A stretch of DNA of 64,000 bases from Adineta vaga (taxonomy: Eukaryota > Animalia > Rotifera). Below the pieces are notes generated by a model, which saw only the letters and a list, made by a program, of their open reading frames with translations, was not told the DNA's origin and did not search any database. The DNA is taken from positions 8,928,001 to 8,992,000 of the forward strand of contig CP075495.1 of NCBI GenBank assembly GCA_021613535.1. The letters run 5' to 3'. Below, piece by piece: positions 27,955 through 32,727 of the stretch (positions are counted from its first letter, which is position 1; each line of letters opens with the position of its first letter). The position numbers and the translations under genes were made by a program.

Positions 27955-28369
27955 TAGTAATAATAAACGGAAGAAGACAAATCAATGGACATGATGATTA
28001 TTTTGTTATCTTCTATTTTCCTAAATTTACTCGTGTTCATTCGCATCGAATGAGAAAAACTAAGTCCTGAACATCGTCAGATTATTTTTCTTTTTTCTTC
28101 CTTCATTTGTTCCCTATATATTTTTTTGTGCCTGTCTGATATACGTACGTTGTTTGGAATGTTCTTTTCTTTATATTTGTGTGCTGATATTTGTCTTTGT
28201 ATATATTTTTTTCCTGCTTCTTTCATTTAGCTGGTAGATTAAAACAGAAAAAAGATTAAGATCAGCGATGCGTATATGCATTAGCTTATGATATTAATAC
28301 ATCCTTTCACGAAAATGTAAACCATTTTTTTCTTGTTTGATTTGCAGATTGAAGTTTTTTTTTAAGAGA

Positions 28370-29096
28370 ATGATTCATAGTCTATTTATTATTAATGGAT
28401 CAGGGTAAATATTAATGATCAATGAATTATTATTTTATTTTTTAATTTCTTCTATGTAGAGATGTGTTTATGGAAAAACATTGGAAAACTGTAATTGGTA
28501 AATCCATATGTGATTACTTCTTCGAAGCACAGTCAAAAGTAAATGAAAATCTCATAAACTGAAACTTGTAAAGAAATAAGATGATTCTTTTCGTTTTAGT
28601 GTGCCAATTCAGAAGATGTACCACCTGTAATTGCTACGCCTCATCATTATTTAGTCAATATATTTCGTAATAATCTCTATTTTGTTGCCGTACTTACCAA
28701 CGAACGTAAGTGCTCTTCATTAACAAAATTGAAACGAATGATATAGATAAAAAATTTTAGTTGCACCATTATTTGTCATTGAATTTCTTCATCGAATAAT
28801 GGATGTATTCGAAAATTATTTTGGTGAATGTACAGAAACATCACTAAAAGATAATTATGTTATTGTTTATGAAGTAAGACAATTTTGTTAAATATTCTAT
28901 TTTAATTGAATATTTTAGTTATTGGATGAAATGCTTGATTCAGGTTTACCATTGGCAACTGAAACGAATATTTTAAAAGAATTAATTAAACCACCAAATG
29001 TTTTGCGTAAAGTGACAGATATTATTACTGGAGATTCTACGAAGTACGTGATAAAAATGAATTATATATTCATTTCATTTTTAGAATTATTCTATA

Positions 29097-29138
<42 letters not shown>

Positions 29139-31279
29139 AGAAAGACAACGAATAGTACAAAATTAAATCTCTTGTTCTAGTATTAGTGATAAACTTCCAT
29201 CTAGTCAATTATCAAATATACCATGGCGTCCTATGGGTATTAAATACACGAATAATGAAGCTTATTTTGATTTAATTGAAGAAATAGATGCTATTATTGA
29301 TCGAAATGGAGTTACAGTTATGTGTGAAATCCAAGGATATGTAAGTGAAATAAATAAATAAATATATATGGTTATTGTTATTGTCATTGCGCGATAAGTA
29401 GTATAGAAATTTAAATTTGAATAATAAAAATAAGTTGAAGTATACGTTTGAAATCTATATATTATTTTTTATTAAAACTTAGTGTTATTATGTCGCCTGA
29501 GAGTGCCAAAGATCTATCGAGTAGAATGATATCGGGTGTAACATGGCGTAAAATGGGCATTGTACATCGTGCAACAAATGAGATTTTACTTGACGTTATT
29601 GAAACACTCGATGCCATTGTCGATCAACGTGGAATGATTATTACTGCCGAAGTCAGCGGTGTGGTACGAGTTTAGCCGCACATATACGCAAAGTTTTGCA
29701 CAATGCTAAATGAAAAATTTTCTCAGATTTTATCGAAAAAAGATGCTGATTCTATTTGTTATGATTGAATTTCTTTTTCCTCACAATGATTGAACGCTAA
29801 TGTTTTGTGTGTTTTGTTTCTGTTTAGATTGATTGCTGTATTAAATTAAGTGGAATGCCAGATTTAACATTATCCTTTATTAATCCACGATTACTGGATG
29901 ATGTTAGTTTTCATCCATGTGTACGATTAAAAAAATGGGAGGTAAAAACAATTGGTTATCACGAAAAAATTCTTCCATTCTATCGAAAAATATGATTCAA
30001 TTTTTATTTAGGGTGAACGTGTTTTGTCATTTATTCCACCGGATGGAAATTTTCGTTTAATTTCCTATCATATTGGCTCACAGAAGTAAGTTATTGATGA
30101 TTGTTTGTTTAGCATATTGTATTTTTTCTGTGTCAACAGATGTCAATTAGAGTAAGTTAATTGTCATTGTATGACGAAAATATATGTGAAGTTTTTCCCT
30201 ATAATAAAAAAAGGAAAACTACCGCTTTATATAGATATGATTAGAAATTCATATTTCATATGAAGATAGTCCAAAAAAAACCTCTAGACATGCACTTAGT
30301 GGTTGATGTATAGGATCTTTTAAAATTCTTCTATATTTGTATAGATTTTATTGATATTGTGTTTCTTGTCTAAACCATTCCCTTAGATTCATCGTTATAC
30401 AGTGAAAAGATTCAGTTTTTATAGTCTATAGAATGCATAATTAATTTTAGACAACCTTGCCATTGTGATATCAAAACACCTAATACATATTTGACACTTT
30501 CTCAAAGCTTTGACTTCTTTGATCCTTCATTTTTCAGTTTGAATTAGACTGGAATAGAATTCTATCTATCGTCACTTGATCTTACCTAAAAAGTATCAAA
30601 TATTAGAATTCTTATGCTAATTATTAACAAAGAAACTGAATAATTTTACTTGTGATAATCTTCAATTTCCCTTGTAGATAGTGTTACCTGAATAGTATTT
30701 AAAAACCTGTTACTTAGATTTCATTTCAAATCCGTAAAAATTGATATTTATTCTAGTGCAATATCAATTCCAATCTATGTTAAACATAATATTCAATTTC
30801 GTGAAGGTAGCAGTGGACGATTTGAATTAACTGTTGGACCGAAACAAACCATGGGCAAAACTGTATGTCTTGATCTTTTCATTTATCATACATTCTTACT
30901 TTTTCTCGTATAGCTTGAAGCTGTAGTTATCGAATGTTCAATGCCAAAAAGTGTTCTCAATTGTACTTTAACACCAACACAAGGCAAATGTACATTTGAT
31001 CCAGTAAAAAAGATTCTGGTTTGGGACATTGGTAAAATAGAAAGTAATACACAAGCTGCAGCTCGTTTACCATCTTTACGCGGCAATATTGTCTTAGCAA
31101 CTGGTCAACCACTACCAGAATCCAATCCGATATTAAATGTTCGTTTTACATTAAATCAAATAGCAATATCAGGCATTCGTGTACAACGTGTTGATATGCA
31201 CGGAGAAAAATATAAACCATTCAAAGGCGTCAAATATATCACAACAGTAAAAAATGGTCGATTTCAAATTCGAACATAG
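28370..31279 (+). CDS. AP3M1: AP-3 complex mu subunit, multi-exon with a duplicated internal exon
   Basis: Contains MIHSLFIINGSGDVFMEKHW, ELLDEMLDSGLPLATETNILKELIKPP, IPWR..KYTNNEAYFD, LSGMPDL, FIPPDGNFRL and YKPFKGVKY..RFQIRT. Confidence 0.95.
29483..29663 (+). other. Alternative (putatively mutually exclusive) exon B of AP-3 mu
   Basis: AG acceptor at 29481-29482 and GT donor at 29664. Encodes VIMSP..VTWRKMGIVHRATNEILLDVIETLDAIVDQRGMIITAEVSGV, homologous to exon A (29181-29340) with the same splice phases. Confidence 0.85.
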
Positions 31280-31498
31280 ATTTCTTCAATGATTTTTTCA
31301 AAATTTTGTTTGTGCAATAGAGAAAAAACCCAATTCCTAATGAATGTCGTTCCGTATTTTATGATTTGATTTCTTTTCTTTTTTTTTGTAATTATACTGT
31401 CTTTTAGTTTCAATTGCTGATTAGACAAAAACGAAAAACACTTCAGAAATAAATCGATAGATTTTTTTTCTTCTTTTAGATATCTAAGTTTCAAATTC

Positions 31499-31780
31499 AT
31501 GGGTAAACGAGGTCGAAAACCAATCAAAAGTGATTCGAATACGCGATTAGAGAAAAGTCGTGAAAGTGCTCGACAATGTCGTCATCGAAAGAAACTTCGC
31601 TACGAATATTTAGAAGAACTTGTTACTGATCGAGAAAAAGCAATTATTCAATTACAACAAGAACTCGAACGTTTACGAACAATTTGTCAATATTTGGATC
31701 AAAATGGTGTCAATAATGAAATACGTCAAGAATTATCTCAATGGAAAGATGATCCTGATGTAATTAATTTGATCAAATGA
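31499..31780 (+). CDS. CREBL2: CREB-like 2 / REPTOR-BP small bZIP protein
   Basis: GKRGRKP..RLEKSRESARQCRHRKKLRYEYLEELVTDREKAI matches the CREBL2 bZIP. No intron is evident in the CDS. Confidence 0.88.
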   Translation: MGKRGRKPIKSDSNTRLEKSRESARQCRHRKKLRYEYLEELVTDREKAIIQLQQELERLRTICQYLDQNGVNNEIRQELSQWKDDPDVINLIK

Positions 31781-32014
31781 AATTGACAAACCAAAACAAA
31801 AATTTCGAATAACAGTTTTCTTCTTCTTCGTATTTTCTTTATGTAAAAAAAACACACATCCGGTTGGTTTTTGTCAAACAGTAAATTTTGTCAATGTGCA
31901 ATTAATGCACGAACAGTATTTTCAAAAATATATTAAATCCGCAAATATTTAAATACATTTCATTCATTGTATTTTCAGATTAGAAAATTCAAACTTCTCT
32001 TTACTTTTATCATC

Positions 32015-32727
32015 ATGGTACGAAAATTACGTTTTCATGAACGTAAATTATTGAAGAAAGTCGATTTTATCAATTGGGAAGTTGATAAAAATCTTCATGA
32101 AGTAACGGTAATGCGCAAATTTCATATACAAAAACGAGAAGATTATACAAAATATAATGATTTATCTCGACGAATACGTGATCTTGCACGTAAAATCAAA
32201 GAATTAGATGCCAATGATCCATTTCGTATTGAAGCAACACGAACATTATTAGAGAAATTGTAAGCAAACAATTCGAATGCTCTCATTTCTGTTTATTCTC
32301 TTTTCATAGACATGCAATTGGTTTAGTTCCAACTCGAGAAAATCTCGAACTAGTTGATAAAATCACTGCTAGCCGATTCTGTCGACGTCGTTTACCTGTA
32401 ATAATGACGCGCAATCATATGGCACAACATTTACCAGGAGCAGTGAAATTCATCGAACAAGGCCATGTACGAATTGGACCTGATATTGTCAGTGATCCAG
32501 CATTTCTTGTTACGAGGTAAATTTAACTTTTCACGAGTAGGTTTTATTTGAAAATTTTCTTCTATGATATTTAGAAATACAGAAGATTTTATCTCTTGGA
32601 CTGATAATTCAGCCATACGAAAACAATTATTAGAATATCAAGATATGGTAAGAACGAGCTTACGAACTAAATTTATTATTTCTTCGATTTGTTTTTGTTT
32701 TCTTTTTAGGAAACTGAAATTGTTTAA
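32015..32727 (+). CDS. IMP3: U3 snoRNP protein IMP3, 4 exons
   Basis: Contains [38 protein letters not shown] and [23 protein letters not shown]. Confidence 0.95.

Follow-up and report, generated by a model that had tools for sequence, protein, structure and literature searches.

We analyzed a 64 000-nucleotide stretch of the rotifer Adineta vaga (contig CP075495.1, positions 8,928,001 to 8,992,000, forward strand; hereafter the window), which contains a gene for the mu subunit of the AP-3 adaptor complex. Two adjacent exons of this gene, A and B, lie between the same two constant exons, 5 and 7. We consider it likely that A and B stem from an old tandem exon duplication and are used as mutually exclusive exons. 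On the sequence evidence, this one gene probably makes two AP-3 mu subunits with different cargo pockets. Positions are those of the window throughout, and Table 1 lists the features.

The pair was proposed in an initial annotation of the window, whose peptides, coordinates, splice ends and phases for exons A and B needed no correction. Read from the second base, exon A has 53 codons and exon B has 60, with no stops in either. Each has AG directly before it and GT directly after it (donor TAT/GTAAGT for A and GTG/GTACGA for B, the slash marking the exon end). The annotation called the two exons homologous, and they are: the peptides are identical at 20 of 50 positions (40%, BLASTP E 1e-14), the DNA can be aligned codon for codon, and both match positions 1–40 of PF00928 (E 5.8e-11 for A, 9.9e-7 for B). 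Its description of exon A as canonical mu3 fits a score of 75.9 bits to human AP-3 mu-1 vs 28.3 bits to mu1. Exon B, described there as strongly diverged yet intact, scores nearly equally to mu3 (29.9 bits) and mu2 (27.7 bits).

Reading frame ties the two exons together. RNA contigs set the neighbouring splice sites, with exon 5 ending at 29043 and the next constant exon starting at 29828. Exon 5 has two leftover bases, and adding either 160 or 181 nt leads to phase 0. Both exons are 1 mod 3 in length, so including both (341 nt) or neither shifts the frame. The annotated rule that either exon alone keeps the frame and that both or neither break it is thereby confirmed with flanking sites fixed by RNA. 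If the A–B intron is retained, a stop codon is reached 6 codons past exon A. The predicted product has 425 amino acids with exon A and 432 with exon B.

Exon B is widely conserved. We sought B-type sequences with the 60 residues of exon B, with an exhaustive HMMER scan of 1.84 billion representative proteins and then with a profile search. The 60-residue search returned five B-type open reading frame (ORF) fragments at 69–77% identity. The HMMER scan returned 15 B-type fragments at 54–76% identity, separated by a clear gap from generic mu matches (at most 59% identity, mostly below 52%), and the profile search with B-type fragments returned 44 B-type clusters. We then compared the contigs of nine fragments and twelve contigs from metagenomes. 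The A–B tandem is found in at least 15 other lineages, which are presumably bdelloid. The window and every contig that carries a B-type exon and reaches from exon 5 to exon 7 have these exons in the sequence 5, A, B, 7; L015 and L027, two shorter contigs, agree with this over the part they cover. The annotation had named conservation of exon B in related genomes as a check, and in these lineages exon B is kept intact; a broken copy in one metagenome lineage (L028) is weighed below.

The two exons differ in how they vary. Exon A is 160 nt in all fifteen lineages, and exon B is 178, 181 or 184 nt, with every indel in frame. The AG acceptors are kept in all fifteen. The A donor is GTAAGT; the B donor is GTG/GTA, reading GTACG in 13 of the 15 lineages read and GTAAAT in L022. 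The A–B intron measures 96–159 nt. Intron G+C ranges from 23% to 52% among the lineages, and synonymous divergence is past saturation. Two lineages (P0064, P0065) have one open frame running through A, the intron and B, and gene callers report from them a 153–161-residue protein with both versions.

Selection was measured with the GY+F3X4 codon model on 10 lineages. Omega is 0.051 for exon A and 0.195 for exon B, and omega = 1 is rejected for B (2dlnL 113.1, p 2e-26). For the first 14 codons of B alone omega is 0.22 (p 1e-6), which argues that translation enters B from its 5' end, at the acceptor, which is what splicing of exon 5 to B would predict. Among the ten lineages of alignment A5, 22 residues of B are invariant. 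The pairwise dN/dS between the window copy of B and its nearest relative is 0.25. Conservation and purifying selection much strengthen the case that exon B is a real coding exon, and a productive mRNA with B only is expected from the selection data.

Exon B also exceeds exon A in G+C in all ten lineages, regardless of intron G+C (42% vs 29% in the window). This prompted us to consider a foreign origin for B, which we rejected in view of its homologous position and phase in every lineage and of its matches, which are to adaptor mu subunits only.

Transcripts were examined as the assembled contigs of four RNA runs; such contigs drop rare forms and give neither levels nor proof of absence. GT..AG junctions occur in all four runs, so the runs contain RNA. 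Seven GT..AG junctions of the AP-3 mu gene are backed by these contigs. In runs X7 and X6, from two studies, single contigs join exon 5 to A and A to exon 7 (junction 29340 to 29828). Exon A is the default exon in public RNA. For exon B, the initial annotation had named junction reads into and out of the exon as a check, and one side of it was found. In run X1, from a third study, the last base of B is joined to exon 7 (29663 to 29828, depth 13.3), so the B donor is in use; the junction from exon 5 into B was not seen in the contigs of the four runs (29043 to 29483). Nor do these contigs hold any A-to-B junction (29340 to 29483); in one study A, the intron between and B do occur together unspliced.

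Run X1 departs from the other runs around exon B. The interval 29341–29827 is present unspliced at a depth of 37–72, like the exons (62–66). The remaining introns of the gene are missing or have a depth of 3–7. The B–7 intron is partly retained (depth 37 unspliced vs 13.3 spliced), and exon A, the A–B intron and B are unspliced on the same contigs. Either the introns around B are spliced slowly, or they are retained in the RNA of this study. Retention is confined to the one study, and the two others splice A to exon 7 cleanly. It may reflect the type of library or a condition-dependent delay in splicing. X1 also has two haplotypes in the A–B intron region (29428, 29446, 29462, 29487), neither of which equals the reference. 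At 29487 one of them has G, so that codon 2 of exon B encodes Val instead of Ile, as in most other lineages. Runs X1–X4, all of this study, hold 91–93% of sampled words. Run X6, which has a different organism label, includes a second contig over 29935–30917 that shows 14 differences over 99 bases and odd joints other than GT..AG; it probably stems from the ohnologue or from a related strain and is imperfectly aligned.

The swapped segment lies at the cargo-binding site of the protein. By alignment to solved structures, the cassette corresponds approximately to residues 153–205 of human mu3A, comprising the end of the linker, beta-1 and beta-2. Exon A aligns to mu3A residues 154–204 with about 80% identity, and exon B aligns to mu3A 157–205 and to mu2 146–198. 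In adaptor mu subunits, the tyrosine and hydrophobic pockets for YXXO sorting signals are formed on beta-1 and beta-16 (PMC3912200), and the tyrosine hydroxyl of the signal is bound by D176 of mu2 and D182 of mu3A (PMC3912200). The initial annotation placed beta-1 of the mu homology domain in this segment and aligned NEAYFD (mu3) with NELFLD (mu2) and NEILLD (exon B); both assignments stand. The exon A motif is NEAYFD, as in mu3A, and all exon B sequences have NE[ILV]L[LVIF]D in its place. The Asp that binds the signal, D182 in mu3A, is thus shared by exon A and all exon B sequences. Two positions before it, the aromatic residue (Tyr in mu3, Phe in mu2) is replaced by an invariant Leu in B, whose neighbours are aliphatic, as in mu2. 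In the mu2 structure, this aromatic residue lines the tyrosine pocket. The linker of B is seven residues longer than that of A and has a conserved G-M-E-T/S-G motif not found in A. A changed signal preference or affinity of the B isoform is plausible on these grounds.

We propose the following model. Exon A would give the canonical mu3 subunit as the default, and exon B a second isoform in which the last part of the linker, beta-1 and beta-2 are replaced and the signal-binding Asp is kept. Mutual exclusion would be enforced by the reading frame: RNAs with both exons or neither would carry early stops and presumably be degraded. Splicing of exon 5 to B would yield a translated isoform, probably a minor, cell-type-specific or condition-specific one. 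This isoform would differ in which sorting signals it binds, or in how tightly it binds them.

Several observations weigh against this model. Chromosomes 1–3 of Adineta vaga are homoeologous to chromosomes 4–6 (PMC8494291), and the ohnologous gene on contig C5 has exon A and a 184-nt intron where B would be. This copy shares its neighbours (the bZIP gene included) and 84% of its residues with the window gene, and its lack of B is a finding of the kind that the initial annotation had named as counting against its reading. Codon 56 of B is an in-frame stop in one metagenome lineage (L028:1501-1680), through either genuine loss or an error of assembly. Exon B evolves about four times faster than A. 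Its window copy has the longest terminal branch among close relatives (0.64 changes per codon vs 0.07–0.23), and in the linker it carries four changes (R5P, G14R, E16I, I19V) at sites where the other nine aligned lineages vary hardly or not at all. As for the RNA, besides the missing exon 5-to-B junction, run X1 has contigs that continue past the A donor into the intron and that run over the B acceptor without splicing. The lone B-to-7 junction may sit on partly spliced or unproductive RNA. No spliced fragment joining exon 5, B and exon 7 is among the 44 B-type ORF clusters, which are all genomic read-throughs (the search saw 64–203 amino acids only). Spliced B-isoform proteins were not found in protein searches either, a weak negative limited by length or clustering.

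Some of these observations would fit an exon B that is functional in relatives and little used or decaying in this species, with an RNA signal produced by slow or faulty splicing. The long terminal branch, the four linker changes and the unseen exon 5-to-B junction all point that way, and the absence of B from the ohnologue and its broken copy in L028 indicate that loss does happen. We nevertheless think such decay unlikely. The window copy has its open frame, its AG acceptor and its GTG/GTACGA donor intact, its donor is used in RNA, its dN/dS to the nearest relative is not near 1, and its beta-strand part is conserved as much as in other lineages. The retained introns of X1 raise another reading, in which the B region is a regulatory device: intron retention or inclusion of both exons would add early stops and tune the amount of AP-3 mu, with no second protein made. 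The near-exon coverage of 29341–29827 in that run would be expected, as would the contig running from exon A into the intron, since such RNA stops 6 codons past A. A poison element, however, has no need of an open frame homologous to A, and purifying selection acts on the entire B frame, the first 14 codons included, with indels in multiples of three and 22 invariant residues. Retention is also limited to one study, with clean A-to-7 splicing in two others. We judge this reading improbable.

Still less probable, in our view, is that exon B serves as the first coding exon of a shorter product, comprising the linker and mu homology domain and lacking the N-terminal longin-like domain, made from a transcript start in the A–B intron or by internal initiation at a Met in B. 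Met15 of B is invariant in all aligned B-type sequences and Met3 is present in most, conserved blocks lie in the intron just upstream of B, and RNA covers both the intron and B. Against this, codons 1–14, upstream of Met15, are under purifying selection, lineages L013 and L015 lack Met3, and every lineage retains the AG acceptor where the phase of exon 5 calls for it. X1 coverage is continuous from exon A, with no start within the intron. Mutually exclusive use of A and B is the explanation we prefer over all three.

Copies of the gene were compared to date the exon duplication against the genome duplication. All B-bearing copies are nearer in per-exon identity to the window copy (83.5–91%) than to the ohnologue (79–84%); the most distant of them, L022 (83.5%), is about as far from it as the ohnologue itself (84.2%). 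Trees of single exons fail to order the exon duplication and the genome duplication. B either predates the bdelloid genome duplication, with a later loss on C5, or came just after it. A relic of B in the 184-nt intron of the ohnologue was considered and rejected: there is a 15-nt similarity at the right place, which is not significant (nhmmer 2.0 and -0.5 bits; local alignment no better than shuffles).

Frame incompatibility explains single inclusion only and not how B is chosen. Steric hindrance between the splice sites of the A–B intron is unlikely unless the branch point is distant, given that the intron (96–159 nt) is long for this genome. Two RNA structures were considered and set aside. 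For a stem hiding the exon A donor, complementarity between intron 5–A and the A donor region (-6 to +30) exceeded dinucleotide shuffles in the first ten lineages (mean z -1.56; Fisher p 4e-4 in six distant lineages), with three controls null and the ohnologue without B null (z +0.29). The effect was not reproduced in five further lineages (z -0.49, -0.89, +1.11, -0.68, +0.36) and is unconfirmed. RNAalifold gave a stem flanking B that pairs CATTGCGCGA in the A–B intron with TTGCACAATG in the B–7 intron. It is insufficient, with 9 bp including mismatches, no compensatory changes and an occurrence in five close lineages only.

The rest of the gene identifies it by sequence similarity as AP-3 mu, its mu homology domain being nearest to mu3. 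Matches to PF00928 (Adap_comp_sub) cover exon A or B and exons 7, 9 and 10. The last exon has AP-3 mu-1 as its sole PDB match (E 1.5e-39), which reaches the C-terminal residue, 418 of 418. The G+C of the window is about 29%, and its introns are mostly 45–75 nt.

Table 1. Features of the AP-3 mu gene in the window.
Feature	Position	Strand	Remarks
AP-3 complex mu subunit gene	28370-31279	+	start codon at 28370, stop codon 31277-31279; ten coding exon positions
Exon 1	28370-28404	+	inferred from sequence and ohnologue only
Exon 2	28460-28538	+	inferred from sequence and ohnologue only
Exon 3	28600-28705	+	stop-free segment and splice sites
Exon 4	28761-28873	+	stop-free segment and splice sites
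Constant exon 5	28919-29043	+	ends in phase 2; donor AA/GTACGT; junction 29043 to 29181 in three RNA runs
Intron exon 5–A	29044-29180	+	137 nt; carries (GAAA)n(GA)n microsatellite
Exon A	29181-29340	+	160 nt; canonical mu3 version; end of linker, beta-1 and beta-2; motif NEAYFD
Intron A–B	29341-29482	+	142 nt; conserved blocks among close lineages
Exon B	29483-29663	+	181 nt; diverged alternative version; motif NEILLD; linker 7 codons longer
Intron B–exon 7	29664-29827	+	164 nt
Constant exon 7	29828-29941	+	entered in phase 0; first letters IDCCIKLSGMPDL
Exon 8	30012-30085	+	stop-free segment and splice sites
Exon 9	30757-30862	+	stop-free segment and splice sites
Last exon (10)	30914-31276 + stop	+	stop-free segment and splice sites; PDB match to AP-3 mu-1

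Other features of the locus were noted in passing. The microsatellite before exon A (about 29089–29149) has no counterpart in the five closest aligned lineages. Downstream, the order AP-3 mu, small bZIP gene, S4-domain gene (window 31421-32520) is kept in other lineages (L006, L007, L010, L016; L002), and the bZIP neighbour is found downstream in other lineages wherever the contig is long enough. Upstream, an RNA contig of run X5 stops with an A run at 28348, 22 nt 5' of the AP-3 mu start codon, and an AG at 28346–28347 adjoins its end. The contig end suggests a polyadenylation site of the upstream gene, which may form an operon-like or trans-spliced arrangement with AP-3 mu.

Vertebrates have two AP-3 medium subunits, the ubiquitous mu3A (AP3M1) and the neuronal mu3B (AP3M2). 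Like the rotifer pair, these provide two versions of the cargo-reading subunit of AP-3 in one organism. Unlike it, they are whole-gene paralogues that differ along their length, whereas in the rotifer one cassette of 53–60 codons would be swapped by splicing. At the aromatic residue of the pocket, the rotifer B version is also unlike every mu subunit of solved structure. Mutually exclusive pairs from tandem exon duplication include exons 5a/5b of SNAP-25 and exons 9/10 of pyruvate kinase M. Exons 4a/4b of OGDH are likewise a mutually exclusive pair (PMC7969005). The rotifer exons resemble all three in being adjacent, homologous, similar in length, identical in phases and both conserved, and in losing the frame when both or neither are included; they differ in the host gene, which is new for such a switch. 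At the level of sequence the rotifer pair has what is expected of mutually exclusive exons, and in transcripts exon A is joined on both sides and exon B on its downstream side. For adaptor mu subunits and for rotifers alike, we found no paper on mutually exclusive exons.

Beta-1 of the mu homology domain forms one side of the pocket in which tyrosine-based sorting signals are read, and a conserved swap of just this strand, made by nature, would serve as a ready-made experiment on what determines the cargo specificity of adaptors. More tentatively, bdelloid AP-3 might have a second, splice-selected cargo mode, in which the B isoform reads other sorting signals or is regulated differently in particular cells or states (neurons, desiccation and recovery), with a switch about as old as the bdelloid genome duplication; we hold this as a possibility and at present doubt it more than we credit it. 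Alternative splicing in bdelloid rotifers has hardly been described. If the two exons are used as proposed, one cassette exon would take the part that the mu3A and mu3B genes play in vertebrates, and AP-3 isoform diversity would be reachable by a single cassette exon and not only by whole-gene paralogues.

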